Made by a program: the position numbers and the translations under genes. The notes under the pieces were generated by a model. That model did not search any database. It saw only the letters and a list, made by a program, of their open reading frames with translations, and was not told the DNA's origin. Positions 8,967 to 63,995 of a stretch of 64,000 nt of DNA are shown one piece after another. Positions within the stretch are counted from its first letter, which is position 1, and the number at the start of each line of letters is the position of its first letter. The stretch lies in the sequence record NC_041975.1; one strand, written 5' to 3'.

Positions 8967-11342
8967 ATGAATTTAAATGTGGACTATACAATTTACGTGG
9001 ATAACACCAAGAAGCTTATCCGCACAATGGTCATTAATTCGGCTCAATCAGCTAATATAATTAACGGCCGTATGGATGGCTTGGGGTACGGTCGTGACAT
9101 CTACGACAAGAGTACCTGGAAGTACTACATGAACATGGCCGGGATCTACCATCCGTCCAATGACCCGATGCAGGTGAAGTCACTCGATAACGGTCAGCTC
9201 ATCGACTTTACCCGTGAGAACATGGAGATCCATGTCAGCACCAAACGCAGCTACCAGTACGGCACCGACTATTATAAAGCCCTGGTTGCCCAATACCCGT
9301 ATCAGATCGCGCTGATCAAGGGGATCTTAAACCCAATTGATCTCAGTGTCTCAACCACCGCCGATGACTGGCAGATCCTCTATTACGATAAGACGCTGGT
9401 AGAAGACGGTGAAGAGAACCTGATCCCCCGTTTCCAGGAGTGGGTCAACACCCTGATCACCCAGACCTATCTGCCGGACTATGTCTACATCACCGAAGAT
9501 CTGATGCACCACTTCTATCTTTCCTTAATTGGTGGTTTTGGCCCTGGTGTGATCCTGGGGATTCGCTTAGAGAACATCAAAACCAACCGGGCACACAGCT
9601 TCCATATCTGGTCGCACATTCTGTCGCATGCTGATATTGAGCAGTATCGTCCGTACCTGAACCGCAAACAGATCCTCTATCTGTATCGCAACATTGTGTG
9701 GCATACCCGCAACCCAGGTGCGCAATACTCCTTCCAGAAGATGATCGACGCCTTCTTAACGGAACGCCGCATCCCATTACAGTCATACAACGCTCAGCAC
9801 AACACCTCGAGCATCCTGACCAAGATTAAACCCGAGGTGGAGTTCAAGCGTGAACTGTTGAACATGCAAGATGCGATTGCCAATGTGAACTATGTGCGCA
9901 GTACCCGTGAGATCCTGGAAGATGAAGTGCCGCTGGCGAAGAACAACGCCGATGTGTACGAAGACCGAATCGGGGAAGTCATTCAGGATGTTGGGACTAA
10001 CCGCAACAGTAACCTGCCGACCAAAGTGTTGGAATCCAACATGCGGGATCTCTCTGACTCGCTGCCGTTCTCACACTCCCTGACATTACTGAACGAATGG
10101 GTGCGGTTGTCCTCTACCGGAATGTACACCGCAGTGATCACCACCACCAACCCCAACACCGGATTGACCATGACCATGACAGTAAAGGAAGCGTTCATCC
10201 TTTACCTGTACGGTGTCTGGCAAAGTCACGGGGTTAACTTGGAGACGATCCCGACCTTCCGTGCCAATATGGTAATGAAGATCCCTCGGCCACAGTTTGC
10301 GTTCTTAAAAGCACAATACGGCTCGCAGCACGTCACTGACGAGTTCATCAAGTACGCCCTGAATCTCTGTCCGGATATCCCGGCGATCATCTCAACAGAA
10401 ACCTTCTATGCGAAGACACTTGAGATTAATGCCGCGACCCAGTTGCACCGGGATCTGTACAGCTACCGTAACCACTATCATGCACGGGCAGAATTCGAAG
10501 CCCTGGCCTTTGGTTTCTACCAAGATCAGGATTGCGACATCAACTCCGGCATGACGTATAAGGAGTTCTTCAAACAGAAGGGGTGGGACTTCACTGACTT
10601 ACCGCCAGAAGAGTGGGTGGTGTTCGCCAACAAGGTCTCCTCCATTGCCACCGGGTTGGACACGGCTAACCAGCAGAAGCTCGCGGATATTCAGCAAGCC
10701 ATGTTGGGTCTGACCATGCAGCTGTCCAGTTACACCATTCAAGTGATCAGGAAGATCAATGAAGAAGCGGTGGTGATGCTCGACTGGCCAACCTTGCGTG
10801 GGGGCGACATGCACATGAAGGTCTATCAACAGTGGCACTTGGTAGATAACCCTGTGCGACCGATTGATACCCACATGCGTGAGAAGAAGACCTACAAGCT
10901 GATCCACGACTTCCCGAAAGGCCATAACTCGGTAGAGCGCAGCTGGCGCTTCTATATCGACACCGCACGGCAGTTAAGTAGTCAGGGAATCAACTCCCGT
11001 TACAACTATTTAAACGGCGCACGTATGCGGCTGTGGACGGCTGACGATGCGGCGGGTACCGAGAACGAGTTTGACCAGCAGATGACCGTGAAAGATCTGC
11101 AAGGTCTCTGGATTGACCCGTACGGCGATGCCCGTCCGCCGGCTGACTTCAGTGCAGAAGTGTTGAACGGATTGTGGACTGATCCGTTACCCGGGATTGC
11201 ACCAATCGTTAGTAGCTTGGGTGGGTTGTGGATCGATGGTCCAAAGAGCAGTGGTTTTGATGAGGATCTCAACGGACTGCATGCCGAAGTCCCTGCGGCA
11301 TTACAAGCCTTACGCAATACCCCGGGTGATAGCGCCACGTAA
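8967..11342 (+). CDS. Virion structural/baseplate protein (phiKZ gp128-like)
   Basis: Motif TWKYYMNMAGIYHPSNDPMQVKSLD is characteristic of this family; GGGAG RBS before ATG 8967. Confidence 0.7.
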   Translation: MNLNVDYTIYVDNTKKLIRTMVINSAQSANIINGRMDGLGYGRDIYDKSTWKYYMNMAGIYHPSNDPMQVKSLDNGQLIDFTRENMEIHVSTKRSYQYGTDYYKALVAQYPYQIALIKGILNPIDLSVSTTADDWQILYYDKTLVEDGEENLIPRFQEWVNTLITQTYLPDYVYITEDLMHHFYLSLIGGFGPGVILGIRLENIKTNRAHSFHIWSHILSHADIEQYRPYLNRKQILYLYRNIVWHTRNPGAQYSFQKMIDAFLTERRIPLQSYNAQHNTSSILTKIKPEVEFKRELLNMQDAIANVNYVRSTREILEDEVPLAKNNADVYEDRIGEVIQDVGTNRNSNLPTKVLESNMRDLSDSLPFSHSLTLLNEWVRLSSTGMYTAVITTTNPNTGLTMTMTVKEAFILYLYGVWQSHGVNLETIPTFRANMVMKIPRPQFAFLKAQYGSQHVTDEFIKYALNLCPDIPAIISTETFYAKTLEINAATQLHRDLYSYRNHYHARAEFEALAFGFYQDQDCDINSGMTYKEFFKQKGWDFTDLPPEEWVVFANKVSSIATGLDTANQQKLADIQQAMLGLTMQLSSYTIQVIRKINEEAVVMLDWPTLRGGDMHMKVYQQWHLVDNPVRPIDTHMREKKTYKLIHDFPKGHNSVERSWRFYIDTARQLSSQGINSRYNYLNGARMRLWTADDAAGTENEFDQQMTVKDLQGLWIDPYGDARPPADFSAEVLNGLWTDPLPGIAPIVSSLGGLWIDGPKSSGFDEDLNGLHAEVPAALQALRNTPGDSAT

Positions 11343-11343
11343 C

Positions 11344-11375
11344 CGGCATAATGAGGGGTCGTCACTGACCCCTCA
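11344..11375 (-). terminator. Hairpin with TATGCCG on the minus strand
   Basis: CGGCATAA at 11344-11351 precedes the 9-bp stem TGAGGGGTC/GACCCCTCA; both flanking genes are plus strand. Confidence 0.6.
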
Positions 11376-11421
11376 AAAGTAATCCTATGTTTACACCACC
11401 TCTACGCCTAAGGAGAACCAC

Positions 11422-12297
11422 GTGCCTGCTAATCAGCCGATTCACGGTGAGGGTGACTATGTTGTAGACGTCGCATTGAGCTCTGCTGAGTTAGTGTATG
11501 GTTTGATTAACCATGACAACAACACAGACTACACCTCATTGACGTTACGGTTAGGAACCCCGACTGTAAATACCAATGCACAGCACGATCGTAATACCCG
11601 TATCTTTGCCCAAACTCGTCCAGGCGCGCCGAAGCAGGGGTCAACGTATTTCTATTATGATCGTATTTCGCTGGCCTACTACCTGCAAAACTACCCCGAC
11701 CTGGAAGTCGACATCACCGATGACATGCTCACCATGCGTGATCTGATTCCGTGGATGAACCAGACCTTTGGATTAGGGTTGGTTGCTGAAGATGTCCGGG
11801 CCGATTTAATTGACCGCACCCCGAACGCTGAAAACCGCTTTGCGATGTCAGCTGCCTCCATGGCCTGGCAGGATTCGATCGTCTTAAAGATCAACATCCC
11901 ACCGGTGGATATTGCCACCTTGACCGGCGACTCGGTCTTTGATGCCATTGAAGTGGTGTCAGAACACCCCCGCACTTACGGTCAGCTGTATGGCTACCAG
12001 GTTGACACCGCTGGTATGGCGGCATTACTGACCGGTCTGCCAATTGGTAAGCTGAGTAATCTCAATGGTGAGAACCTCACGCAAGCATTGTCCACTGCTA
12101 CTTCTGACTATTGGGCTTTCGATGCAACTCCAGTTGTCCGTAACCTCTATGGCGCTACTGTGCGCTTTAATGGTCGCAGTACTGACCAGGCCGTGTACCC
12201 CACTAAACCAGACAACGCGTACATGGTAATCGTGGATATTGTTGAGAGCGAATGCCTGGAGTTCGAAGGCCCGTTGGTTCTCTACTACACCCGTTAA
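11422..12297 (+). CDS. Virion structural protein, paralogue 1 of a tail/baseplate family
   Basis: GTG start with AAGGAG RBS. Shares YxRxxL, xGLxLxxxD and NLxGAxVx(F/Y)NG motifs with 12313-13131 and 14043-14912. Confidence 0.7.
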   Translation: MPANQPIHGEGDYVVDVALSSAELVYGLINHDNNTDYTSLTLRLGTPTVNTNAQHDRNTRIFAQTRPGAPKQGSTYFYYDRISLAYYLQNYPDLEVDITDDMLTMRDLIPWMNQTFGLGLVAEDVRADLIDRTPNAENRFAMSAASMAWQDSIVLKINIPPVDIATLTGDSVFDAIEVVSEHPRTYGQLYGYQVDTAGMAALLTGLPIGKLSNLNGENLTQALSTATSDYWAFDATPVVRNLYGATVRFNGRSTDQAVYPTKPDNAYMVIVDIVESECLEFEGPLVLYYTR

Positions 12298-12312
12298 CCG
12301 AGGAATCGCATT

Positions 12313-13131
12313 ATGTTACAACGCATTCTGCAAAAGACGGCTAACGAGATTATCGTTGAACCGTTTAACCTGGCTTTTAACACCAACTTAAAAGCTGCCA
12401 ATTTTGAGCTGAAGGATGTCGGCCCTGCAACCGGTGGAAAAGATACCCAAGCCACCTTGTCGGTGATCGACACCACTTCCGGGTATAAAGGTGAGCGTCC
12501 GTTCACGTATAACCGTCTGGATGCCACAGAACTCTTTTACGGTGTGCCGAAGTTCTTCCCAATGGGTTCGGCTGACATTGATGAATACTCTGTCGTTGGG
12601 ATGCTGGCCTTACGTTATGGTCTGAAGCTTGACATCAACCATATCGCTAACGTCGCCATCACTGCCGGTAAAGCCGTGGTAACGTTTGCAGATTCATCCC
12701 CGATCATCAAAGGCAGTGTGCAGTTTGACTTCTACGATGAAGCCATCGATTTGGAAGAACTGATTGCTGACCCAGAAATCGGCGTGCTGGAGATGCCAGA
12801 GCGTACTGAGAAGCCGAACGTGACGTATTACAGTTACGCGTATGACATGACGTACTGTAAAGCGTTTGTTCCGGGTATGCCGGTGGGTTCACTGGCAACA
12901 CAGGAACTGGCCGACGCGGTAGCGAACATCACCGGTGATCCGTGGGTGTTGGCAGACGGCTCGACCACTGAATACAACCTGGCCGGTGCCGAGCTTGTCT
13001 ACAACGGCAACACCACCACTGCGAATGCCCAGGGCTATCCCGTCAATGACGAATACGCCATGGTGGCTTTGTTTAAATTAACAGATTCATGTAATAATTT
13101 TAGTGGTCTGCTAATGGTTAACATGAACTAA
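12313..13131 (+). CDS. Virion structural protein, paralogue 2
   Basis: YNRLD, RYGLKLD and YNLAGAELVYNG motifs shared with neighbouring paralogues. Confidence 0.7.
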   Translation: MLQRILQKTANEIIVEPFNLAFNTNLKAANFELKDVGPATGGKDTQATLSVIDTTSGYKGERPFTYNRLDATELFYGVPKFFPMGSADIDEYSVVGMLALRYGLKLDINHIANVAITAGKAVVTFADSSPIIKGSVQFDFYDEAIDLEELIADPEIGVLEMPERTEKPNVTYYSYAYDMTYCKAFVPGMPVGSLATQELADAVANITGDPWVLADGSTTEYNLAGAELVYNGNTTTANAQGYPVNDEYAMVALFKLTDSCNNFSGLLMVNMN

Positions 13132-13151
13132 TCTGTTGAAAAGGAACAATA

Positions 13152-14027
13152 ATGAAACGTAATGTCAGATCGCATGCAGGGAACATGTTGCAGGTCGCCC
13201 AGATGTTGGGGATTGCACATGTGGTTCAGGAGCACACCACGCTGAATGAAAAGTTCAATGTGCTGCCTGATCAGATCCCGCAGACCGGTCGCCCTAACAT
13301 GCAGTACTTCTGCATTGGCTTTGGCGGACACAAAGGTATTCTCGGTAAGAACAATACCTTCCTGTCCACATCGATCGACCACTACCCGGATCATGCAGCG
13401 CTTTATAAACACATCCCGTTTGTGTTGCGTGAGATCGGTAATGACCTCACTGCAGATCAGCGCGCGAAGTATCGTCTGCGCAGCATCATCACGCTGGATG
13501 ATGGCAGTCGCTATATCGCCTATTACCTGAAGAAGATCGAACTCAGTAATGTGGTGGTGCGTTCTCAAAAGAACACACGCGATGAAGCCGGTTTAATCAC
13601 CACCTCTGACTATGTGCCGGATGCCTCGGTACTGAACCCACAACAACCTGAACTCAACACCAACAACATCGACCAGGTAGTCACCTCCACGACCTTCTTG
13701 TCAGCCAACGCTGAACTGGATCTGTCGCTGAATGAGCTTGACTGTTCAGAGCTGCTCGATGTCGCCCGCATCCTTTATAAAGATGAAGCGTATGCCCTGG
13801 TGTCGGAGTACGGTTTGGTGGCGGGTATCGATGTCCCTGCTCAGGGTTCAACCGGTGCTGGCGGAACCATTCAGTATACTGAAGTGGTGGCGGCACAGAT
13901 CGTGGACTTCATGACCAACCGTGGCTCAGGTGCGGATGATGACGATAAAGGCATCACCTGTCTGGTCAACTACGGTGCTACTGAGCCGCTGTTAGCTGAC
14001 AGTGGTGCAAACGCAACAACCGTCTAA
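13152..14027 (+). CDS. Conserved virion structural protein (phiKZ gp139-like)
   Basis: Motifs TTLNEKF, YFCIGFGGH, ALYKHIPFVLR and YIAYYLKKI are typical of a phiKZ-like virion family. Confidence 0.7.
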   Translation: MKRNVRSHAGNMLQVAQMLGIAHVVQEHTTLNEKFNVLPDQIPQTGRPNMQYFCIGFGGHKGILGKNNTFLSTSIDHYPDHAALYKHIPFVLREIGNDLTADQRAKYRLRSIITLDDGSRYIAYYLKKIELSNVVVRSQKNTRDEAGLITTSDYVPDASVLNPQQPELNTNNIDQVVTSTTFLSANAELDLSLNELDCSELLDVARILYKDEAYALVSEYGLVAGIDVPAQGSTGAGGTIQYTEVVAAQIVDFMTNRGSGADDDDKGITCLVNYGATEPLLADSGANATTV

Positions 14028-14042
14028 TGACACGGGGGTGAC

Positions 14043-14912
14043 ATGAACATTCTGGGTAAAGATCCACAACAGTTGATCAAAGAACTCGCTGCCGGTCACA
14101 ACAATGTCACGTTGGTGCCAGGGGCGACGAAAGTGGTTAACTTTCAAAACCTGGCTGGTACGGTTGGTATTGACGCACAGGCGGATATTGTCCCGGCTGA
14201 CCCGACCGTCTATTACCGTAAGAAGACCATCCAGTTTGGCAAGATCGATCTGTCCAAGCATTGGTTGAATCAGCGGCTGACGATCCCACTGCAGGCGAAC
14301 TCAACCAGCCACAGCATCTTACCGCAACTGATCAAACGTTATGGTCTGAAACTGTCCACCGATGATCTGGTGCTGACCACGGTAGATACCAGTAAAGATA
14401 TCTGGGAATTACCGATTCGGGTGAAAGCCACCTCGTGGGTCTTTAAGAACACGCTGGACAACATTATCGTCTACGCCACCGATGTCAGCACTGATCTGCA
14501 GTATGTGATCAAGCGTCCATCGTTAACCGGACTGGCGTATCCTTCTGCCGATACCACCAAGATGCAAGGCCCGCTGTTAAGCTACGGCATGCATTACAGT
14601 GTGTATACCGGACAGAACGAAGCCCTCCGCAATGCGAAGGTCGGTTACAAGATGATTGTGGCCTCTGACGATGACTGGGCGATTGCTGATCTGCTGTCGG
14701 ACTATACGGGCCTGGCGTGGTCGTTTAAACAGACTGGGCCAAGCCTGTACAATGCCGAAGTGGTTTACAATGGTGTTGCAACGAATGTACCGAGCACCTA
14801 TTCCCATCTTGATCGCAATAGCGCCACGAACTTCTTAATTTTGAAGCTCAGTGGTGTTGGTGATGTGGGCGGGTATGTGGCTATTGGTTACACGATCGAA
14901 GTTGATCCGTAG
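14043..14912 (+). CDS. Virion structural protein, paralogue 3
   Basis: KIDL, RYGLKLSTDDL and SLYNAEVVYNG motifs shared with 11422 and 12313. Confidence 0.7.
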   Translation: MNILGKDPQQLIKELAAGHNNVTLVPGATKVVNFQNLAGTVGIDAQADIVPADPTVYYRKKTIQFGKIDLSKHWLNQRLTIPLQANSTSHSILPQLIKRYGLKLSTDDLVLTTVDTSKDIWELPIRVKATSWVFKNTLDNIIVYATDVSTDLQYVIKRPSLTGLAYPSADTTKMQGPLLSYGMHYSVYTGQNEALRNAKVGYKMIVASDDDWAIADLLSDYTGLAWSFKQTGPSLYNAEVVYNGVATNVPSTYSHLDRNSATNFLILKLSGVGDVGGYVAIGYTIEVDP

Positions 14913-14926
14913 CAGTGTATAAATAA

Positions 14927-14950
14927 AGGGTGGGGCTTCGGCTCTGCCCT
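14927..14950 (+). terminator. Hairpin AGGGTGGGGC-TTCG-GCTCTGCCCT, no U-tract
   Basis: UUCG-capped stem after the structural operon, directly upstream of the ruvC RBS. Confidence 0.55.
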
Positions 14951-14961
14951 TAGGGAGTCTT

Positions 14962-15567
14962 ATGATGGTGTTGCAAGATGGACGCCCGGTGGAAGAGTTA
15001 CTGCAGGTCTCCATTGACCCCGGAACCGATACCGTCGGTGTTACGTTATTGGGATTGCATCCGATCACCCTTGAGATGACCTGGAAGGAATCCTTTACGT
15101 TGTATGGATCATTGCTTAATTACCGCTCAGAGCTCGTGTTCCAGGAAGACCGGAATCGCGATGCACGTTTAAAGGGCCTCACTGATGCCCTGCTGCGTTA
15201 TCTCTGTACGGTGCGGCCTCACGTAGTGGTGTTTGAAGATAACTTCTTACGTCACTCCCCACAGGCCTTTAAAGCACTGATCGAATCGGTGGAAGCCATT
15301 AAGCGCGCAGTCTGGGGATATAACCCATACTTACCGTTCTATGAGATCTCTCCGATGCAGGCGAAAGGTGCCGTGAATGCGATTGCTCCTCGCGGACAAA
15401 AACATGATAAGGAGCTAGTGCGTAAGGGACTGATGAACTATCCACGTTTACAAATCCCTCATGCTATTTTGCAGACACTCTCTGAGCACGCAGTTGACTC
15501 CGTCGCCATCGGCATCTACGGCCTGGAACAATTGTCGCTCGCATTGAGTGCTGCTCATTGGAGATAA
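14962..15567 (+). CDS. ruvC: RuvC-like Holliday junction resolvase
   Basis: SIDPGTDTVGV (D1), VVVFEDNF (E), ISPMQAKGAV and SEHAVDSVAIG acidic motifs of the RNase H-like RuvC fold. Confidence 0.85.
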   Translation: MMVLQDGRPVEELLQVSIDPGTDTVGVTLLGLHPITLEMTWKESFTLYGSLLNYRSELVFQEDRNRDARLKGLTDALLRYLCTVRPHVVVFEDNFLRHSPQAFKALIESVEAIKRAVWGYNPYLPFYEISPMQAKGAVNAIAPRGQKHDKELVRKGLMNYPRLQIPHAILQTLSEHAVDSVAIGIYGLEQLSLALSAAHWR

Positions 15568-44088: not shown

Positions 44089-44445
44089 ATGGAGGTCGTC
44101 ATGCCTTTTATTCGATTCAAAGCAAAAGAGATTAAACATACTGCGGAAGCCGTAACAAGCCTTAAGCGGTTCTTTGGTCTGATTGATAAAAACATTGATG
44201 CCGTTAAGATTGTCCAGGCATTTCAAACGGTCGATACCCGCAACGAACCATTGCTGGAAAACTCGTTGTTGATTATCACACGGATGCCAGACGGGACAAA
44301 ACGTCACACTCATATCTGGAACTCGAAGTTCAAAGAAGAACTCGCTGCATTTAAACCTGAACTGGTTGGTGAAGTCCGATCGTTCAGACTCGATTATCAG
44401 TTGTATATGGACGGCGACGAGGATAACCCCCTTAAGCGGTTCTAA
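44089..44445 (+). CDS. Hypothetical protein
   Basis: 118 aa (ATG 44089, or ATG 44101 with GGAGG RBS). Confidence 0.6.
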   Translation: MEVVMPFIRFKAKEIKHTAEAVTSLKRFFGLIDKNIDAVKIVQAFQTVDTRNEPLLENSLLIITRMPDGTKRHTHIWNSKFKEELAAFKPELVGEVRSFRLDYQLYMDGDEDNPLKRF

Positions 44446-44455
44446 GGAATCTAAA

Positions 44456-44978
44456 ATGAAAGGTACGTTGGTTGAGCATCTTGCCAGTCGTGGCTATGAT
44501 GTTGCACGGTATAAAACGCAGTGGTTGACAGACACCCAGTTGACTGTTCCATTGTTCGACTTCGATCACAAACTCAAAGGGTATCAGGTTTATACACCTG
44601 ATGCACCTAAGCATGCCGCTAACCCAAAAGAAGCACGTTACTTTACACGTGGTCTAGGTAAGCAGTTGGTGTGGGGTCTGGAGTTGGAAATTAGTATTAA
44701 CAACCAACAGATTACCAACCGTATTCTTAACTGAATCGGTTTTCAAGGCCTGTGCACTACATCGCTTAGGATTGAACGCCTGGTCTGTTTTAGGTTCTAC
44801 GGTATCTGACCCACTCTATCACCAGCTTCGCTTATTACCTGTTGACTTAGTTTGTTGCGGGGATGATGACAAAGCAGGGAAAGTATTCTCAGAAACCTTT
44901 GGTCGAGGTTTTGTGTCGCACGATCTGGATGAATTATCCCCGAAAGAATTACTCTACTTAACTGCACCGTTTTTATAA
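44456..44978 (+). pseudogene. Primase-like TOPRIM gene split by a +1 frameshift near 44690
   Basis: Frame 1 gives HLASRG...VPLFDFDHKLKGYQVY...RYFT...VWGLE. The +1 frame gives VFLTESVFKACALHRLGLNAWSVLGS...CCGDDDKAG (TOPRIM E and DxD). Confidence 0.7.
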
Positions 44979-44989
44979 AGGTAGTTATC

Positions 44990-46228
44990 ATGTCAAACAT
45001 TATTGAATTAGAAGGCAAGCAGGTTCCCATCAAGATGTGGACGAAGTTTGTTCCGGTAGAAGAACGTGCTCAACAGCAATTACTAAACTTGAGTGAGTTA
45101 CCTTTCATCTTCAAACACCTCGCCGTGATGCCTGATGTGCACTGGGGAATGGGTGCGACCATTGGTTCGGTTATTGCGACTAAAGGTGCGATTATTCCTG
45201 CTGCTGTGGGTGTTGATATTGGTTGTGGGATGATTGCCCAACAAACCTCGCTGGTTGCTGCTGACCTACCCGATAACCTCAGTGCTTTGCGCAGTCGTAT
45301 TGAAGCAGGCATCCCGCATGGCCGTACCGATAACGGCGGTGCAAACGATCGCGGTGCTTGGGGTGATGAGTTCGCCATGGGCTTAGACGATGTGCACCGT
45401 GAAGCATTGCTGGTTCTTCAGCAACGTTTAGTGGCTATTGTGGCTAAGCACCCGAAGCTCACCAAAGCAGCCAGTAAGTTCACCAAACATACTGGCACAC
45501 TGGGTAGCGGTAACCACTTCGTTGAAATCTGTTTAGACGAAGAGCAACGCGTTTGGGTAATGTTGCATTCAGGTTCACGTGGCATCGGTAACACCATCGG
45601 TAAATACTTCATCGAGAAAGCCAAAGAAGAGATGAACCGTTTCTTCGTCCATTTAGTTGACCAAGATCTGGCGTATCTCCCAGAAGGCTCTCAGTATTAC
45701 GATGACTACCTGCAAGCGGTGCAATGGGCACAAGACTTTGCAGCGCTCAATCGTGCGGTGATGCTGAGTGCGACACTGAAGGCATTGCACAGTGCCGTGG
45801 CTAAGCCATTCACTGAAAGCACCATTGCGGTTAACTGTCACCACAACTATGTCGCAATGGAAAACCATTTTGATACCAATGTCCTGGTCACCCGTAAAGG
45901 TGCAGTGCGGGCGCGTGTAGGTGATTTGGCGATTATCCCGGGTAGTATGGGTGCAAAGTCGTTTATTGTCGAAGGGCTGGGTAACCAGGAAAGCTTCTGT
46001 TCGTGCTCGCATGGTGCTGGTCGTTTACTGTCGCGCTCAGCAGCGGTGAAACAATTTAGTCTGGAAGACCATATCCGTGATACCGAGGGTGTGGAATGTC
46101 GTAAAGATAAAGACGTCCTTGATGAAACACCGAAGGCGTATAAGTCGATTGAAGACGTGATGCGTTCACAAGACGATTTGGTGAAAATCAAATATACCCT
46201 GAAACAGATCCTTTGTGTAAAAGGTTAA
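44990..46228 (+). CDS. rtcB: RtcB RNA ligase (3'-phosphate/cyclic-phosphate joining)
   Basis: MPDVHWG, VGVDIGCG, GTLGSGNHFVE, HSGSRG, NCHHNY, TRKGA, PGSMG, SCSHGAGR, DETPKAYK. Confidence 0.97.
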   Translation: MSNIIELEGKQVPIKMWTKFVPVEERAQQQLLNLSELPFIFKHLAVMPDVHWGMGATIGSVIATKGAIIPAAVGVDIGCGMIAQQTSLVAADLPDNLSALRSRIEAGIPHGRTDNGGANDRGAWGDEFAMGLDDVHREALLVLQQRLVAIVAKHPKLTKAASKFTKHTGTLGSGNHFVEICLDEEQRVWVMLHSGSRGIGNTIGKYFIEKAKEEMNRFFVHLVDQDLAYLPEGSQYYDDYLQAVQWAQDFAALNRAVMLSATLKALHSAVAKPFTESTIAVNCHHNYVAMENHFDTNVLVTRKGAVRARVGDLAIIPGSMGAKSFIVEGLGNQESFCSCSHGAGRLLSRSAAVKQFSLEDHIRDTEGVECRKDKDVLDETPKAYKSIEDVMRSQDDLVKIKYTLKQILCVKG

Positions 46229-52025: not shown

Positions 52026-52789
52026 ATCTTTATCTCGTCTCTGACAGTCGTTATACCCCGCCAGGTGATTTCTACAATAACTGGTTAGTCCACGCTAATA
52101 GTCGTGACAATGCCGCGATGTTGTGTAATTCACGTTGTCTGGTTGATACCTTTGAGATCGGTAGCCTGAACTACAACAACGGCGAACTGATCATGATGCA
52201 CAAGACCGTCCAGCACACGGATGAACCGCGTCTGAAGCAGAAGGTTGGTGATGCACTGTATTATCCTTTAACGGTATCACCTGACAGCAGTGCCTTTGAC
52301 CGTATCATTGGTGAGATCGTGAACAAAGCCGCCTCTCCGTTACCGGAAGGTGTCTCTGTCGATCGCCTTCTCATCAATGCTGACAGTCCTGAAGCGCTGT
52401 TCTTTATCTCGCGCCATGACTTTGGTAGTTCGCGTTGTTACTACAAAATCCCCAGTGAACTCGACAGCCAGATCTCTAAACTGCTGGACTTCAATAAAGG
52501 CGAGCGTATTCCCCGTACGTCCCACGAACCGGTCGTGCTCTCCTGGCGTAGTCGACTGTCCCTCATGATCGCGCGTCAGCATGATGATGCGTACAACCAT
52601 GAGAAGCTGGAGATCTACCGTAAAATGGCATTTGATCTGGTAGCTGCTGCGACTGACCACGAGAACGCTGCACTCGCGATACTGGACCCGGACCAACCCG
52701 AATTCAAAGTCTGGATGCCCGGGATTGATGAAGAGAAGATCCATCAAGCGCTGGATGCGTTTGGCGCACCACGTCAGTTAGGGGAATAG
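52022..52789 (+). CDS. Hypothetical protein
   Basis: 255 aa; ATGA overlap with the previous gene. Confidence 0.7.
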   Translation: MNLYLVSDSRYTPPGDFYNNWLVHANSRDNAAMLCNSRCLVDTFEIGSLNYNNGELIMMHKTVQHTDEPRLKQKVGDALYYPLTVSPDSSAFDRIIGEIVNKAASPLPEGVSVDRLLINADSPEALFFISRHDFGSSRCYYKIPSELDSQISKLLDFNKGERIPRTSHEPVVLSWRSRLSLMIARQHDDAYNHEKLEIYRKMAFDLVAAATDHENAALAILDPDQPEFKVWMPGIDEEKIHQALDAFGAPRQLGE

Positions 52790-52806
52790 CCTATTAGGAG
52801 CTGTTT

Positions 52807-53397
52807 ATGGAGAGGATAACATTAGCTTGGCTAAGAGCTAATCAAGGAAGGAAATCTCTGGAAGATCGTTTGTTTCAATTCGGTCACGTTTATAGTGAGA
52901 GAGATTCCTGTTTCACCTGGCGTGGGATGGTGGATAATTACGGCTACGGAAAGATAAAGGTTAAAAGTAGATTGGTGGGTGCACACAAACTGTCTTATCT
53001 GCTATTCAAAGGGGATATTCCAGAAGGTATGGTAGTTAGACACACGTGCGATAACCCAGTCTGTATTAACCCCTCTCATTTAATCGCGGGTACGGTAAAG
53101 CAAAACGTTCATGATGCAATAGCAAAAGGCCGTGCTTCTTTTCAGAATGTTATCAATTCATCGGTATGTAAGTTTCTGCCGGCCAACGCTATTATTATGG
53201 TAGATAGAAAGATAGGCCCACTACTATGTTATGCAACAACCCGGCGATTAGCCCTTGCTGATAATTCTAAAGTTTACTGGGGTCGTCCGTGTAGGTCACA
53301 CGGCATGCCTTGGAGAAGAACCAGTAATGGCGAATGTGTCTATTGCAGACACGAATACCGAGCAGGTGTGAAGTATACACCTAATGGAAAGAGGTGA
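52807..53397 (+). mobile_element. Free-standing HNH homing endonuclease
   Basis: CFTWRG...GYG....AHKLSY...GDIPEGMVVRHTCDNPVCINPSHL..GT..QN..D..KGR plus a C-terminal CxxH...CxxC. More AT-rich than neighbours and uses AGA codons; AGGAG RBS. Confidence 0.9.
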
Positions 53398-53412
53398 TCC
53401 CTTTATCTTCCG

Positions 53413-55502: not shown

Positions 55503-56208
55503 CCGTATCTTTGCCAATTATGATGGTTACATTGAAGCTATTGATGCGCATTTTAAACCTACCTATCAACTGCAGCTGGCTGAGCAAGTCATCCCGGCTG
55601 AACAGATGGATAAGCTTGTAACCTGGATGGACCACAACGCCCATGTCAAGGGCGCAACCGTCTATCTGATGGAGTTGGTGCCTGATCTCGATAAACCGCA
55701 TCCTGTGCAATCAGAGATGCGTGTGTTTATTGCACTCGGTATGTTTAATCGTGAAGTCAACCCTGATTTGCCTTACTGGTGTCATGTACATCACCATTAT
55801 CCGGTTAACCTCGCTGTCGACTTGATTGTTACTGACCTGCAAGGCGTTCCTGTAACCCATGCCGTTCTGACTGCGTTTAAGTCATTTGATCGAGCGCGTA
55901 CCTACAGGGATAATCTCGGCGGCAAAGGTGGACATCAACCGCATCACGAAATCCATACTGGCATTATTGACCAAAGTGGTAAGGTGATCTTCGAAGCCTA
56001 CGGGAATATCAACTGGCATACCAAGAATGCCATTCGCCGGCTGGCTGAACGACAGATCCTACAGGAAGATACCGAGTTGTCAGCGGTGTGGTTACTGGCG
56101 GGTTTAAAAGCAGGTGTCAACTGGAAAGTCGAAGACCACGTTGACATCATGAAGGCAATCGATACTTTCCGTCCGAGGAATACCCATGATTTTAACGGCT
56201 ATGTTTAA
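55486..56208 (+). CDS. Hypothetical protein
   Basis: 240 aa; overlaps both neighbours. Confidence 0.7.
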   Translation: MQNLNDRIFANYDGYIEAIDAHFKPTYQLQLAEQVIPAEQMDKLVTWMDHNAHVKGATVYLMELVPDLDKPHPVQSEMRVFIALGMFNREVNPDLPYWCHVHHHYPVNLAVDLIVTDLQGVPVTHAVLTAFKSFDRARTYRDNLGGKGGHQPHHEIHTGIIDQSGKVIFEAYGNINWHTKNAIRRLAERQILQEDTELSAVWLLAGLKAGVNWKVEDHVDIMKAIDTFRPRNTHDFNGYV

Positions 56209-56950
56209 GAAGTGCTTTGGTGCGTCGTCTGTCTATAAAGAAGATGACGGCAGTACACGCATTACCGCTGACCAGTATGAACTTACGCTGGGTCGATCCT
56301 ACCATCCTAAGCTTAAGCGTAAGGTAGGTCGGGGTTTTGGTTTCTATGTCGAAAATGGCGAGAAGCTCGAGTTCGTCTTGCGGGGTTACTGGTTTGTGTT
56401 GATCGCCTGGAGCAAGAAGCGCAAATCACTCAAGTGGGACGAAGCGGAGAATGCACCGACTTACGGCTTCAATGTTGTTGACTCTGACTTAGCGATCTAT
56501 CTCGGCAACGAATCCGCTAAGTCAGACAAACACATCAGCATGCGTAGTCGTAGCAAATATATCCCCCTGCCCTGGGCCTGGACCTTCCATAAGCGTGAAG
56601 TGTTAACCACCCGTGACACCTGGGCTGATGTCAAAGAAGGTGCGTTGTCTCAAGAGTGGTCGTTCCCCGCCACATACGTCACCAAGCACAATGAAGTGCA
56701 AGAGATGATGATCGAAGCGAAGATGGAGCGCATGACCTGGCGCCTGGCATGGCTCCCTTGGTTCGTACCGGTTACCAAGAAAGACCGCTCGGCGAGTTAC
56801 AAGTACCACGGGAACGGTGGTAACGGGGTTGGTCACGACGCCAGTGGCTGGAAAGGCGGGGTCATCGGTGGCGGGGTCATCATGCGAGACAATGAACACA
56901 ACCCGAAAGAAACATTCGACCGTTTAATTAAAGAGCAGCATTACGGCTAA
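56201..56950 (+). CDS. Hypothetical protein (Trp/Lys-rich)
   Basis: Long ORF; ATG 56201 preferred over 56186. Confidence 0.7.
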   Translation: MFKKCFGASSVYKEDDGSTRITADQYELTLGRSYHPKLKRKVGRGFGFYVENGEKLEFVLRGYWFVLIAWSKKRKSLKWDEAENAPTYGFNVVDSDLAIYLGNESAKSDKHISMRSRSKYIPLPWAWTFHKREVLTTRDTWADVKEGALSQEWSFPATYVTKHNEVQEMMIEAKMERMTWRLAWLPWFVPVTKKDRSASYKYHGNGGNGVGHDASGWKGGVIGGGVIMRDNEHNPKETFDRLIKEQHYG

Positions 56951-56962
56951 GAAGGAAAACAC

Positions 56963-58114
56963 ATGCGTCAGTATTTGGATGGGATTCGTTACATCTTTGA
57001 GAACGGGTCACAACGAGGGGATCGCACCGGGGTAGGTACGTTGTCGGTGTTCTCGATGAAGCAGACTTATGATCTGCGTCTGGGATTCCCACTGGTCACC
57101 AGTAAGAAAGTGCGTATCGATTTTATTATCGAAGAGCTCATCTCCTTCCTGTCGGGTAATCCCGATATGCCGGGTGTGGGTATCTGGGATGATTGGCGTG
57201 TTAAAGACGAAGTCTCCCGTGAAGTCCCGTTAGAGAACCACGAGCGTTTAAAACTCTGGGTTGAGAAGTCGGACCTGAAGTATAACGTTGCTTACCTTCA
57301 ACTCAATGCGATGGGTTCTGTCGAAGCGGGTCATCGTTTCCTGGATGAGCAAGGGATTCCGCGTAACAGGAAAGAAGTACTGGTAGCAGAAGGTGCACTC
57401 AATGCACCCTATGGGCCAGCGTGGCGTGCGTGGAAAGGTCGTCTGGGCGAAGTGCATGATCAGATCGGTTATCTGCTCAAGTTGCTTAAAAACAATCCTA
57501 CGAGTCGTCGTATGCTATTGTCTGCCTGGGACCCAGCGAACATGCCGGATGAGTCTATCAGCCCGCAGGATAACATCATTGATGGCAAGCCACCTCTGAC
57601 TCCGTGTCATTGGGCGTTTGAGCTGTACACTGACGAAATCCTGGCAGAGGAACGCCTTGATTGGGTCGAAGCTAACGCACCTAGCCTCTGGGAAGACTAC
57701 AATGATCGTTCAGGACGTGGTCAATGGCTAGGCGACACAGACAGTAAGCGCCTTCATGAATTCCTGGACGAAGCCGGCGTACCGAAGTATTACCTGGATC
57801 TGAAGTATCACCAGCGTTCATGTGACTATATGGTTGGCGTGCCGTATAACATCGCCAGCTATGCGGTGTTGCAGCACATGTTCGCCGCCACCTGTAACAT
57901 GATCCCGCGGATACTGGAAGCGGATATGACTAACATCCATATCTACAACTTCCACAAAACCAATGCGGTCATGCAGGCCAGTCGCAGCCCACGCGCACTA
58001 CCCACTCTGAAGGTACTCGCCGCTCACGATAAGTTGGAAGACTATACGTTGGAAGACTTTGAACTCGAAGGTTATGATCCGCATCCTTTTATTAAATATG
58101 AAAGAGCGGTCTGA
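56963..58114 (+). CDS. thyA: Thymidylate synthase with two insertions
   Basis: DRTGVGT, GFPLVTSKK, YG..WR.W, NPTSRRMLLSAW, PCH (catalytic Cys), QRSCD..GVPYNIASY, HIY. Confidence 0.97.
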   Translation: MRQYLDGIRYIFENGSQRGDRTGVGTLSVFSMKQTYDLRLGFPLVTSKKVRIDFIIEELISFLSGNPDMPGVGIWDDWRVKDEVSREVPLENHERLKLWVEKSDLKYNVAYLQLNAMGSVEAGHRFLDEQGIPRNRKEVLVAEGALNAPYGPAWRAWKGRLGEVHDQIGYLLKLLKNNPTSRRMLLSAWDPANMPDESISPQDNIIDGKPPLTPCHWAFELYTDEILAEERLDWVEANAPSLWEDYNDRSGRGQWLGDTDSKRLHEFLDEAGVPKYYLDLKYHQRSCDYMVGVPYNIASYAVLQHMFAATCNMIPRILEADMTNIHIYNFHKTNAVMQASRSPRALPTLKVLAAHDKLEDYTLEDFELEGYDPHPFIKYERAV

Positions 58115-58595: not shown

Positions 58596-58644
58596 GTCGG
58601 TGAATAACCTTTCACTAATTAACCAATCCGTAGGGAGTTTTATC

Positions 58645-60021
58645 ATGGCTGCATTAAAATCTAAAGTTGAACTGTTTCACTGGTATCAGGAACTGAAAAC
58701 TGAATTTAAAACCGGCAAGATTACCGTGTTCGAATTTGAGCGGCAAGTGCTCAGCGAAATTCTTTCCCTGACCGATACTGGTAAAACACCATCTACTGCC
58801 AAAATCAGTTTGGTAGTGGACATCCTTAATTCTGTGGTTTTTGATCATGTGTTTACCGCAGACGGTATCATTGACCTGGACAACATGCTCGCTCGTGAAC
58901 ACGTACGCAACATTTCGGAATTGACGGCAGCACGCAATAACTTTATTACCATACAAGCCCAGGCCCGTCTGAACAAAGAAAAGGAACAGACTGCGAAACC
59001 AGCAGAGCAGAAGGCATTTGCCAAGTTTCCAACGAAAGAAGAGCTCGAATATTGGGTTAATGCCAGAAAGCTATTCCGTTATGGTAACCCCAATACGCTC
59101 GGCACTGAAGCATACCAGGAGGTTGTCAAATACTGGCATCTGGTCGATAAATATCTGGGTACATTAAAACTGGAACTGGATCACACCGACCCTAACTACG
59201 TCGATAACATCTTGTTGATTGACTACTTTGTATCGTTGGTCGCCAAGCAAGAGGTTCCTGAGGAAGAACGCAGGCATCTGAAAGACACACTTAGCAGTCT
59301 ATATGCGTGCCCCATTAAAACCCCACACATCGATGCATTTGTCGAACGTGGCCAACACCCCCTTCCAGTTAAGCCAAAACAACCACCCATCGCGCAACAA
59401 GCCATCGACCGCGCTATTGCCTGGCGTGAAGAGGAAACCAAAACAAACCATCAGCAAAAAGACATATTACGAGAATTCGCCGATCAATACTGTCCGGTAA
59501 TGGTGGCCAAGCAACATGCCACTCAGCAGTTGTTTGATTTCGTTGCTCGTGCGGTGAAACGTGTCTTGACCGCCATTGCTCAGCCAAACAACCCGGAAGA
59601 CGCCGAGATGCTGGCAAAAGGTCATGCCATCAACATTCTCAATGTTAAGCATGGTGTAATTGGTGTCAGTACCACGATTACCAGAAACGGTCTGGTCAAG
59701 TTACGCATCTTCGCTGAACGTGAACTATGTAACGAGGACTACGGTATTCCGACTCTGTCGTATAATCAAGTCCGTCAATCACCTCATGCAACGTTCAGCA
59801 TACCAGTGCCGGCACTGATAGATGGGTTCATTAACATGTGGGATATCCCTAATCAGGCCCCTCGCCATATGCATAATAGCGTAGGCGGTATGTTGGGTAA
59901 TCCCTATCCGTTACAGCAGCTTGATGGTTTGATGTCAGCTATTGCAAGAGAAGCAGCCGAGTACGGCGTTACGCCTACTTATGGCAGTACTGAAGACAGC
60001 CTTATCGTTGTTCTCCATTAA
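58645..60021 (+). CDS. Hypothetical protein sharing N-terminal helical motifs with 60083
   Basis: GGGAG RBS; WYQELK..FKTGKI motif. Confidence 0.75.
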   Translation: MAALKSKVELFHWYQELKTEFKTGKITVFEFERQVLSEILSLTDTGKTPSTAKISLVVDILNSVVFDHVFTADGIIDLDNMLAREHVRNISELTAARNNFITIQAQARLNKEKEQTAKPAEQKAFAKFPTKEELEYWVNARKLFRYGNPNTLGTEAYQEVVKYWHLVDKYLGTLKLELDHTDPNYVDNILLIDYFVSLVAKQEVPEEERRHLKDTLSSLYACPIKTPHIDAFVERGQHPLPVKPKQPPIAQQAIDRAIAWREEETKTNHQQKDILREFADQYCPVMVAKQHATQQLFDFVARAVKRVLTAIAQPNNPEDAEMLAKGHAINILNVKHGVIGVSTTITRNGLVKLRIFAERELCNEDYGIPTLSYNQVRQSPHATFSIPVPALIDGFINMWDIPNQAPRHMHNSVGGMLGNPYPLQQLDGLMSAIAREAAEYGVTPTYGSTEDSLIVVLH

Positions 60022-60029
60022 TCCACACG

Positions 60030-60056
60030 GGGAGGTTCGCCTCCCTTTTATTTTTT
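60030..60056 (+). terminator. Intrinsic terminator (UUCG) with U-tract
   Basis: GGGAGG-TTCG-CCTCCC-TTTTATTTTTT. Confidence 0.85.
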
Positions 60057-60082: not shown

Positions 60083-60784
60083 ATGAACAAAGAAACTTAT
60101 ACTACCTGGTACAATGGATTAAAAGAAAGATTGGCGGCAGGTGACATTGATCAAGTTACTTATGAATCGCTTATCATCAGTAATCTTCATTCGTTGCTGA
60201 CTCGACACAGACATACCCGGCACGATATTAACCATCTGCCGTTACCAAAACATTTCGAACTGATTAACCATTATTTCGAACTGATTGCTGATGCAGAAAT
60301 GTCAGAAAGAAATGCCAGACATTTAGTCTCTTTTGTGGCCAGTATTATCGAGGCGATCCCGGCAGCCAGGGCATTCGGAAAGAAACATAACACACCACTA
60401 CCCCCTTCTAAGGAAGAGCTCGAGGGTAAACTTGCTTGGGGACGTAAGAAAGTCGCTACCCCAACTGAAGCGATGCGTGGTCGTCCGGTGATCACCCAGG
60501 TCAACGAACCTGAGAACGAAGTAACCATTGAACTACCCTGGAAAACCGCATTGCACGTTTACAAAGGGTTCCTGGTAAAGGCACTGATGTCAAAGCACGG
60601 ATACCAATACAGTGATGCGTATAACCACATTACTGATCATCAGAACAAATACGACGAACTCTTGGCAGAAGTCCTCAACGACATTATTGCTAATAAAGAG
60701 TCGCATCTGGTGTCGGTAGGTGGCGGCATCACTGCAGCGGGTACTGGTCTGGTGGTAAGCGGGATTATTAAGCCGGAGGAATGA
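60083..60784 (+). CDS. Hypothetical protein: helical N-domain fused to an RNAP beta-prime-like fragment
   Basis: RKKV.........RPVIT.......ELPW..AL..YK..L...L...GY....A...I......YD.L..E.L..IIA resembles phiKZ-type beta-prime; see findings. Confidence 0.6.
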   Translation: MNKETYTTWYNGLKERLAAGDIDQVTYESLIISNLHSLLTRHRHTRHDINHLPLPKHFELINHYFELIADAEMSERNARHLVSFVASIIEAIPAARAFGKKHNTPLPPSKEELEGKLAWGRKKVATPTEAMRGRPVITQVNEPENEVTIELPWKTALHVYKGFLVKALMSKHGYQYSDAYNHITDHQNKYDELLAEVLNDIIANKESHLVSVGGGITAAGTGLVVSGIIKPEE

Positions 60785-61344
60785 TGAAAGGAGAGATAGA
60801 GACACGCTTCAGAAGACACTACGGCAACCACATTAAACGGGGTAGTGATATCGCAGTGCCTTTATACCACATTAGTCTACAGAATGACTTGGAGGGGCTA
60901 TGGCGACCTAAAGCCCCTGACTCGCCATTTGATATTCCGAAGAAACCCAGCATCATTACTGAAATGCCGCTCCCGCGTATCTGTGTAGCACCATCTATCG
61001 AACAGTGCTTCTGGGCAATCTATCCCAATATCTCTAAGTTCTTTGAAGAGGAAGAATACGCTGCGGTTTGTTTTGCGGTTTATCAACCGATTCTGCATGC
61101 CGGTATTGCTGTCGTGGATACCAGTACGTTAACGCAATGCCGACTGGTGCACGATGCACATATTACCGGCGAGCATTGGTTACTCAGTGATACCACCATG
61201 TGTGTGATTGACTTTATTCAGGTTAAGAACACTTCACACGGTGAGTTCGTAAAGTTCCATCCGTTTGATACTCCGGCTGGTAACGAGTGGGAACTTGCCC
61301 CTAAAAATGTTGTTTATCATTCACTTAAATTAACGGAGTTGTAA
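60784..61344 (+). CDS. Hypothetical protein (PRICVAPSIEQC family)
   Basis: E..PRICVAPSI..C and VHDAHITGEHW motifs of a widespread phage family. Confidence 0.7.
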   Translation: MKGEIETRFRRHYGNHIKRGSDIAVPLYHISLQNDLEGLWRPKAPDSPFDIPKKPSIITEMPLPRICVAPSIEQCFWAIYPNISKFFEEEEYAAVCFAVYQPILHAGIAVVDTSTLTQCRLVHDAHITGEHWLLSDTTMCVIDFIQVKNTSHGEFVKFHPFDTPAGNEWELAPKNVVYHSLKLTEL

Positions 61345-62925: not shown

Positions 62926-63456
62926 ATGGATGGTTTATTTAATCTCTCCTCATGGCAATCGCTTTTACTTGTGGTAGTTGTACTCCTGCTGTGGGCGTAT
63001 TACCAACGACTTCAACACCTGCGTCGTAAGTATCATCGCCGTAATGAACGCATGATGGCGCAGAGCGTGGTCATGACATCCCGGCTGTTACTGAGTACCT
63101 TCTCGGAGATTGTGGAACGCGCTAAAGAGGAGGACATCTACCAGCGTGATCCTAACTCCCCGATTGCGGCAGACCGGGCCAGTGCGATGGCCTGCTCCTC
63201 CATCTTCAGTGGGTTGTATAACCTGGTTGTGGTGCCCGTCACCACCCTTGATCCGGTGTTCAACGATTTATTGATTACCGGTACTGAGCGGGAAGATGTT
63301 GAGGAAGGGGTCTTTGTGTCGTTTTATTTGGGTGAACAGCGTAATGATGTGGTTAGGCATTTTATACCCGACCGGTCGTTACAGGCCTTTATCACCCAAA
63401 CGCGTGCCTTCAGTGCTTACCTGCGACAGGCTGCGAATACAAAACCACCACAATGA
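62926..63456 (+). CDS. N-terminally membrane-anchored hypothetical protein
   Basis: TM segment LLLVVVVLLLWAYY followed by a basic stretch. Confidence 0.7.
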   Translation: MDGLFNLSSWQSLLLVVVVLLLWAYYQRLQHLRRKYHRRNERMMAQSVVMTSRLLLSTFSEIVERAKEEDIYQRDPNSPIAADRASAMACSSIFSGLYNLVVVPVTTLDPVFNDLLITGTEREDVEEGVFVSFYLGEQRNDVVRHFIPDRSLQAFITQTRAFSAYLRQAANTKPPQ

Positions 63457-63464
63457 GGTGACAC

Positions 63465-63995
63465 ATGACCAATTATGGTTTTCTGCTGAACACAGTACTT
63501 CTGGCTTTTCTTATTTGGTTTGGTTACCGACTGCACACGTTGGTAAACAACAGCGAGAAAGCCACCCTCGCCGCTGATCATAACGCCAAGCTGCGCTTCC
63601 TGACCTATGCAGCCCGGCAGATAATGAGTGACTTGTATACGTCGCTCAATCTTCCGACGCTCACCGGGTGTGCGAAGATGTATCTACGCGATGACGGCAA
63701 GCTTGATAATATTGAAGTCATTATGCGACTCTTCATGAAAACCCATAATGAGATTATTACCAAGCTCTCCGAGGGATTGGTGTCGGATCATTTGAAGATC
63801 ACCGATGTTAAAGTTACCCATGATCTGGTGACCAACGAAGTGCTCATCACACTCTTGTATCCGAATAAAGTCACTGACATCCTGGTCTTCCATCATAACC
63901 ACCTGGCGCAGGCGATCTACCAACTGGATCGATTGCAACATCGGCTCTCAACGTTCCACAAAGCGGTGCCGAACCGCGACCTGTACCAACTCTAA
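63465..63995 (+). CDS. N-terminally membrane-anchored hypothetical protein
   Basis: GAGGTG RBS; TM segment FLLNTVLLAFLIWFGY. Confidence 0.7.
   Translation: MTNYGFLLNTVLLAFLIWFGYRLHTLVNNSEKATLAADHNAKLRFLTYAARQIMSDLYTSLNLPTLTGCAKMYLRDDGKLDNIEVIMRLFMKTHNEIITKLSEGLVSDHLKITDVKVTHDLVTNEVLITLLYPNKVTDILVFHHNHLAQAIYQLDRLQHRLSTFHKAVPNRDLYQL

Follow-up and report, generated by a model that had tools for sequence, protein, structure and literature searches.

Nucleus-forming jumbo phages rely wholly on split RNA polymerases (RNAPs) of their own, and the closest described counterpart of the gene reported here is a subunit of the non-virion enzyme (nvRNAP) of phiKZ. In phiKZ the N-terminal part of the beta' subunit (beta'N) is a separate protein, gp55, which binds gp71-73 and gp68 (PMC8287921), its partners being the beta C-half subunit and the sigma-like subunit. 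In the structure papers, the catalytic DFDGD motif of gp55 is located at residues 417-421, with the clamp helices, which receive the N-terminal domain of the sigma-like gp68, upstream of it. The nvRNAP subunits are imported as a co-dependent assembly with the help of poorly conserved, lineage-specific factors (10.64898/2026.09.21.753271). Here we describe gp73 (SPECIALG_73), a protein encoded in a 64,000-nucleotide stretch of sequence record NC_041975.1 (hereafter the window), which is built around a non-catalytic piece of a beta'N subunit. By megablast, the window was identified as bases 1-64000 of Erwinia phage vB_EamM_Special G (KU886222.1, 273 kb, genus Agricanvirus), whose relatives, including Ea35-70 and RAY, are 97.5-99% identical. 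Special G infects the fire-blight bacterium, and RAY has been characterised as a nucleus-forming member of the Chimalliviridae. The first-pass annotation of this DNA had delimited the open reading frame correctly (60083-60784, 233 residues), and the segment singled out in it, 60416-60697, does correspond to residues 112-205.

That gp73 carries a fragment of beta', as had been proposed there, was confirmed with a similarity far beyond chance. Profile comparison of residues ~110-210 with the phiKZ nvRNAP was significant: when the gp73 family was compared with 38 beta'N proteins, hhalign returned a probability of 99.5% and E=1.5e-22 and aligned gp73 111-206 with residues 291-386 of gp226, the gp55 ortholog of Special G. 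In PHROGs, phrog_2987 ('RNA polymerase beta subunit') matches gp73 residues 60-205 over profile positions 232-368 of 478 (E=1.4e-16). Against the PDB, gp73 as a single-sequence query retrieved phiKZ gp55 at E=7e-4, and the profile of the 12-member family retrieved it (7ogp_A) at E=7.9e-10 together with AR9 nvRNAP beta' (E=6e-5) and, marginally, the cyanobacterial gamma subunit and bacterial beta'. HMMER, run exhaustively against 1.8 billion representatives, gave 222 matches, nearly all of them to beta'N proteins of 400-510 residues, matched at residues ~250-370. Both gp55 and gp180 had been named as counterparts of the fragment; the match proved specific to the non-virion gp55 type, and the part of that statement concerning the virion type, gp180, has to be dropped. 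The RK-to-R.VIT spacing and the PW motif, both typical of these subunits, are present in gp73. No Pfam family was found for gp73, a match to SHOCT being below threshold (E=0.13).

HMMER posterior alignments place the start of the module at residue ~110 (95 in some alleles) and its end at residue 206, and the borders are sharp in hmmsearch (73-93 bits). In a purpose-built hidden Markov model (HMM) of beta'N, the positions matched by gp73 are ~270-366 of 483; in native phiKZ gp55 the matched stretch is ~269-364, once an offset of ~21 residues due to the tag is allowed for. Placed in this way, the module aligns with the switch-2-equivalent stretch plus the helical region leading into the double-psi barrel, which in bacterial beta', from what is established for that subunit, is conserved region C plus the beginning of Rpb1 domain 2. 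With an HMM made of foreign beta'N segments only, gp73 modules scored 76-93 bits and gp226 76-84 bits, the median for beta'N proteins in a leave-one-out comparison being 115 bits. The gp73 family retains ~12 of the 19 columns that are at least 70% conserved in the beta'N segment, and the beta'N-conserved residues kept by gp73 are R121, V136, I137, P152, W153, L168, A179, and Y190. Based on these HMM scores and on the retention of W153, A179, and Y190, the module is canonical, which fits retained interface and fold constraints. The last three residues are all replaced in gp226, where PW to PR, A to C, and Y to T changes are found clade-wide at positions otherwise 79-95% conserved, and gp226 lies at the bottom of the beta'N score range for the very segment that is copied in gp73 (this also applies to L028-L030).

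The translation of gp73 contains neither DFDGD/DxDGD nor RNPSL/RNPTL, and it has zero cysteines. DxDGD is absent from gp73 and from 11 of the 12 family members, the remaining member having 'DFDGA' in a unique 37-residue extension. The match stops at residue 206, after which HLVSVGGG occupies the place of the hydrophobic strand plus NRNPSL of the beta'N family. Also absent is the Cys4 zinc element, for which C72, C74, C87, and C90 are invariant or nearly so in the beta'N alignment. The switch-2 arginine, a nucleic-acid-contacting residue 95% conserved in beta'N, is Thr128 in gp73 and Thr or Ile across its family, the second switch-2 arginine is Cys or Gln in some gp73 alleles, and both histidines conserved in the beta'N segment are missing. 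The earlier statements that the match ends before RNPTL/RNPSL, that DFDGD is lacking, and that the protein is non-catalytic thus agree with the HMMER borders and the translation. The bare homology to beta' is already on record: a figure legend in Prichard et al. (2023) describes phiKZ gp055 as homologous to two RAY genes, gp223 and gp070, the AH06 record annotates its gp73 ortholog as a beta' subunit, and PHROGs links phrog_2987 to phrog_11276, the own family of gp73 (E=1e-146). Since the defining catalytic features are absent, the annotation of the AH06 ortholog as an RNAP subunit is misleading. A literature search returned no description of the truncation of gp73, its feature loss, its three-module build, its invariant tail, its allele exchange, or its coupling to gp74.

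As judged from sequence comparison, gp73 is a stand-alone protein of three modules, in which the beta' module retains its fold-defining residues (Table 1). The first-pass annotation had described a fusion to a helical domain unrelated to beta', and for residues 1-112 no beta'N homology was detectable (hhalign E=0.17). This N-domain is 41-62% identical across the family. Its proposed relationship to the product of the neighbouring gene, gp72, holds for the first ~40 residues, where gp73 3-40 and gp72 22-59 align with an hhalign probability of 87% and E=3.6e-6 (BLASTP E=6e-5 and 0.026), but not for the remainder. Some BLASTP and HMMER alignments with beta'N run colinearly into the N-domain, to residues ~21-60, and a diverged beta' clamp region is a possible but unproven identity for it. 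The C-terminal tail, overlooked in the first-pass annotation like the allele replacement and the coupling to gp74 described below, is the best-conserved part of gp73. It was found nowhere else in the Special G genome or in the phage collection, and when the tail alone was compared with beta'N, hhalign found no match; judged by eye, it lines up with the first beta' barrel strands, without statistical support.

Table 1. Features of the gp73 locus of Special G, with positions in the window.
Feature	Positions	Strand	Description	Basis
gp69	56186-56950	+	annotated 'hypothetical protein'; full-length PF25187 'CBASS inhibitor Acb3', E=6.6e-63	
gp72	58600..60021	+	473 residues; residues 22-59 paralogous to gp73 3-40; family confined to the same clade	
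Terminator-like GC (guanine-cytosine) hairpin plus T-run	60029..60056	+	between gp72 stop and gp73 start	scan
gp73 (SPECIALG_73)	60083..60784	+	233 residues plus stop; annotated coding sequence (CDS), 'hypothetical protein'	open reading frame list
gp73 N-terminal all-helical domain, residues 1-110	60083..60412	+	helices with a predicted local distance difference test score (pLDDT) of 82-91	AlphaFold2 (AF2)
Allele-replacement island versus RAY	60098..60497	+	58-74% DNA identity, flanks 96-100%, sharp borders	100-nt sliding identity
gp73 beta'N-derived module, residues 111-206	60413..60700	+	switch-2-equivalent, PW hairpin, three helices	hhalign
gp73 switch-2-like loop, residues 111-138	60413..60496	+	more variable in the family than any other stretch; 32-65% identical to Special G	
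gp73 Gly-rich hydrophobic C-terminal tail, residues 207-233	60701..60781	+	SHLVSVGGGITAAGTGLVVSGIIKPEE; near-invariant in 12 members	
GGAGG Shine-Dalgarno and gp73/gp74 overlap	60775..60786	+	Shine-Dalgarno in last gp73 codons; gp73 stop overlaps gp74 start (ATGATGA)	sequence
gp74	60784..61344	+	186 residues; 77% mean column identity in clade	

The gp73 family consists of 11-12 clusters with 52-97% identity, and the open reading frame is intact in every member of the clade. In 8 of 11 clusters the longest contig measures 89-288 kb, and the others are found on short contigs. No member was found by HMMER among the 1.8 billion representatives outside the agricanvirus-like phages, other chimalliviruses included; surveyed in related phages, the fusion is thus kept across the agricanvirus-like clade and confined to it. 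The gp73 clade is monophyletic (100/99) and has a long stem. gp226 is not its sister, and the only grouping, a weak one, is with P0015, an ordinary beta'N encoded next to chimallin. Monophyly and the long stem point to a single, old origin without an identifiable donor. The idea of a 'captured' RNAP piece was not borne out, as gp73 is only 23% identical to its own gp226, and a recent capture from an identifiable donor is not supported, given the long stem and identities of 22-31% to all beta'N proteins. Decayed agricanvirus-like fragments in phage gene order were observed at ~9290-15076 of a 4.7 Mb contig with 41% GC (L009; GCA_054859325.1, contig JBTAPL010000082.1); they comprise a gp73 tail, a frame-shifted gp75, and the N-terminus of gp76, and are interrupted by a retroelement gene with reverse transcriptase plus integrase. 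They resemble phage DNA lodged in an assembly that is probably eukaryotic.

The selection acting on gp73 was assessed as the ratio of nonsynonymous to synonymous substitution rates (dN/dS) in a codon-level comparison of seven family members. The ratios were 0.10-0.29 for the N-domain, 0.07-0.43 for the beta' module, and 0.01-0.14 for the tail, the last at 50-70% synonymous divergence. Values well below 1 throughout indicate that gp73 is functional and that the tail is constrained as a peptide. On one genome pair, beta'N is 89% and gp73 61% identical, and gp73 evolves ~3.5 times faster. In a comparison with RAY, to which Special G has a median identity of 98.5%, an island of replaced sequence covers most of the N-domain and the switch-2-like loop (Table 1). 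The dS of this island is 1.85 against 0.04 in the tail, with a dN/dS of 0.14, and the saturation of its synonymous sites identifies it as an imported allele. Genome-wide, Special G and RAY differ at ~15 divergent loci, mostly indels of HNH genes, none of which lies in an RNAP gene. A metagenomic allele, P0001, equals that of Special G except in codons 96-137, where six codon changes are non-synonymous and three synonymous. Positive selection on the switch-2-like loop was considered for this allele and rejected, as the changes are clustered, have an about neutral ratio, and resemble a gene-conversion patch. The same metagenomic contig carries a replaced gp74 cassette, which marks the gp73-gp74 operon as a hot-spot for the exchange of alleles.

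Replaced or diverged sequence was also observed elsewhere. Positions 61083-61282 of the window (gp74 codons ~100-166) constitute a sharply bounded replaced cassette relative to L025, a metagenomic phage that is nearly identical elsewhere, with 58.5% identity between flanks of 93-100%. Positions 52601-53400 and 44201-45000 are absent or strongly diverged in RAY and cover the HNH endonuclease gp63 (52807-53397) and gp47-gp49, respectively. Further loci diverged from RAY are found at genome positions 91601-92000, 166201-166800, 189201-190400, 212001-213000, and 256001-256200.

The neighbourhood of gp73 shows conserved synteny, in the order exonuclease, Acb3-like protein, thymidylate synthase, gp71, gp72, gp73, gp74, gp75, and phosphohydrolase. 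The Acb3-like gene, gp69, is located four genes upstream of gp73, in the same position in all related contigs, and its identity to RAY (90-94%) is slightly below that of its neighbours. Special G has an uninterrupted thymidylate synthase gene (window 56963-58114); in AH06 (L008 775-2769) an HNH homing endonuclease gene divides it into two CDS. No relation of gp72 to the PDB, Pfam, or beta'N was detected. The hairpin between gp72 and gp73 is kept as a structure in three related contigs (L010, L011, L012), where the stem sequences differ yet pair. Downstream, the overlap or abutment of gp73 and gp74 is conserved in RAY, AH06, L011, L012, L013, and L025, and with the Shine-Dalgarno sequence in the last gp73 codons the two genes are, as read from the sequence, translationally coupled. 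Distant gp74 homologs occur without gp73, beside an SNF2 helicase gene (once directly after it) or an HNH gene. The AF2 model of gp74 has a pLDDT of 34. Searches of Pfam, PADLOC, and PDB sequences returned nothing for gp72, gp74, and gp75, and none of gp72-gp75 matched a known defence or counter-defence family in PADLOC. Farther downstream, gp77 and gp78 (62926-63456 and 63465-63995, + strand) are adjacent open reading frames of 176 residues with hydrophobic N-terminal segments, the maximum Kyte-Doolittle hydropathy over 19 residues (KD19) being 2.09 and 1.58; both are probably small membrane proteins, possibly tandem paralogs.

With the helical half of its beta' module and its tail conserved, and its N-domain and loop varying freely and independently of the phage's own RNAP genes, gp73 is most economically read as an adaptor-like mimic. 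The roles suggested in the first-pass annotation, as a decoy, an assembly factor, or a regulator of phage or host RNAP, are plausible. We propose, at a probability of roughly 0.4, that it is a non-catalytic mimic of a beta'N surface, an accessory or conflict factor. In this model, the tail and the conserved half of the beta' module would imitate the beta'N surface in protein-protein contacts and would bind what normally docks there in the nvRNAP, whether gp252 (beta C-half), gp253 (beta'C), or the sigma-like fifth subunit; the exchangeable N-domain and loop would be turned towards a partner that varies. As a result, polymerase subunits would be sequestered or modulated while they assemble or enter the nucleus. 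gp73 has the traits of an accessory gene: it is restricted to one clade, evolves faster than gp226, undergoes allele replacement, and has Acb3 nearby. On account of this evolutionary behaviour and neighbourhood, a setting of conflict, between phages or between phage and host, is rated somewhat more likely than housekeeping transcription. Several points weigh against the proposal. The mimicry leaves the role of the tail unexplained. The AF2 monomer of gp73 is of moderate quality (pLDDT 68), and in Foldseek searches of the PDB and BFVD the beta' matches of this model were not significant (best E=0.24), even though RNAP chains dominate its top ranks despite their weak E values. Finally, the whole-genome comparison of Special G with RAY revealed no co-varying partner, that is, no matching island in any RNAP gene. 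Changes in the variable part of gp73 are thus not mirrored in the polymerase of the phage itself, and its target may be something other than RNAP.

The same conserved surface could serve a housekeeping purpose, with gp73 acting as a lineage-specific assembly chaperone or import adaptor for the phage's own nvRNAP by transiently occupying the docking site of beta'N. The strongly retained beta'N profile and the purifying selection would be expected of such a helper, and nvRNAP import depends on subunit-subunit contacts. Import factors of the Imp7 type are reportedly poorly conserved between clades, and Special G is without an Imp7 homolog. However, gp73 has no sequence relation to Imp7 either: the hhalign E values were 0.28 (gp73 family) and 0.071 (gp72 family), and the best tblastn match in Special G had E=0.088. 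In addition, the N-domain and loop are swapped between phages with nearly identical RNAP genes, and the gene, evolving much faster than gp226, sits in a variable accessory region rather than in the core blocks. We therefore regard the helper role as unlikely.

An extension of the mimicry that we likewise hold to be rather improbable is that gp73 and gp74 form a conflict module using a piece of the phage's own RNAP as a weapon or a shield, the swapped alleles of the N-domain and loop setting its specificity. As a weapon, the dominant-negative beta' mimic would poison nvRNAP assembly or import of co-infecting, more canonical chimalliviruses, and the resident gp226 would be spared through the divergence of its own equivalent surface (e.g., W to R at the PW motif). 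As a shield, gp73 would be a decoy soaking up a host factor that recognises or attacks the conserved beta' surface.

The tail allows for yet another function. As a tail anchor or glycine zipper it might place the beta'-like module on the inner membrane or on the early vesicle, or drive self-assembly. It is a 21-residue uncharged stretch with charged flanks at the very end of the protein, is subject to very strong purifying selection, and has a small-xxx-small pattern (G214-A218-G222-S226); chimalliviruses reportedly use a lipid vesicle early in infection. Yet its hydropathy is below the usual thresholds, with a KD19 of 1.35-1.5 (usual threshold ~1.6) and a summed Hessa free energy of ~+4 kcal/mol; for comparison, the transmembrane segment of gp77 has a KD19 of 2.09 and a Hessa value of +1.3. 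AF2 builds no helix here and leaves the tail unstructured (pLDDT <50), and one family member has 37 more residues beyond it. A tether of this kind thus seems to us even less probable than a helper role. In that family member (P0008, L011 6700-6813), the extension contains 'PDFDGAAV', reminiscent of DFDGD, and is similar to nothing else among the sequences compared; the DFDGA-like sequence may be chance or a relic. Two further ideas about the tail were discarded. That of a portable module had been prompted by P0012 (E=9.4e-14), which is a multi-exon model over a decayed agricanvirus-like fragment in a 4.7 Mb contig with 41% GC. A Rossmann-like reading of GxGxxA, made by eye only, does not fit the short length of the segment or its spacing to the acidic residue.

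It is highly improbable that gp73 supplies a beta' segment lacking in the annotated subunits, even though jumbo-phage RNAP genes are notoriously split and the homolog in AH06 carries a beta' subunit annotation. In Special G the segment is contained in both enzymes. gp226 (genome 184973-186460), the phiKZ gp55 ortholog (E=1.6e-67), matches phrog_2987 end to end (2-478 of 478) and has RNPTL as well as DFDGD at 435; gp165, the beta'N of the virion polymerase (vRNAP), shows a colinear switch-2-like stretch of its own (residues 226-254), with DYDGD at 483. The updated annotation of RAY names all eight beta/beta' pieces of the two enzymes (gp154, gp163, gp164, and gp270 for vRNAP), with gp70, the gp73 ortholog, still 'hypothetical'. 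Moreover, the gp73 family is absent from other chimalliviruses, and neither gp73 nor RAY gp70 is flagged as a virion protein in annotations that list those detected by mass spectrometry. As both gp226 and gp165 include the segment and none of the eight subunits is missing, gp73 is not a split-off part that one of the phage polymerases lacks, nor is it a catalytic subunit. Equally implausible is a decaying, functionless remnant of a duplicated or partially copied beta'N gene, which the truncation, the loss of catalytic motifs, and the highly variable switch-2-like loop might suggest, but which is at odds with an open reading frame intact across 52-97% identity, dN/dS well below 1 everywhere, a tail almost invariant despite saturated synonymous sites, and the conserved coupling to gp74.

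These results bear on two open questions: the assembly of the subunits of these polymerases in the absence of an alpha platform, and what licenses their import into the phage nucleus. As a natural, selected, and non-catalytic copy of one beta' surface, gp73 could be used as a probe for binders of that surface. If the dominant-negative or decoy version were true, gp73 would stand for a new class of phage conflict proteins that originate from the core transcription machinery, and would be a tool for inhibiting chimallivirus polymerases; if it is a clade-specific helper only, it would still show the reuse of polymerase fragments.

Compared with described systems, gp73 shares with phage mimics, decoys, and RNAP-binding regulators the concept of surface imitation and a location in an accessory region near Acb3, but no homology to any of them, and we know of no characterised mimic built from a piece of the phage's own polymerase subunit. 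With phiKZ Imp7 (gp166), the enhancer of nvRNAP import, it has in common small size, restriction to a clade, and a putative action on the nvRNAP through protein-protein contact. This is a functional analogy only; Imp7 is not derived from RNAP. The conserved segment is common to gp73 and the beta' N-terminal subunit of the AR9 nvRNAP (7S00/7S01 chain d) at the profile level, but the AR9 and bacterial beta' proteins are catalytic subunits of active enzymes. The closest relatives are the beta'N subunits of the phiKZ gp55 type (7OGP/7OGR/8QUE chain A), to which gp73 is homologous over ~97 residues with the same spacing of RK, R.VIT, and PW. It covers only about one-fifth of such a subunit and lacks the zinc site, detectable clamp-helix homology, RNPSL, the double-psi barrel, and DFDGD; and it differs further in the replacement of the switch-2 arginine by threonine, in its unrelated N-domain and novel tail, and in its faster, mosaic evolution.

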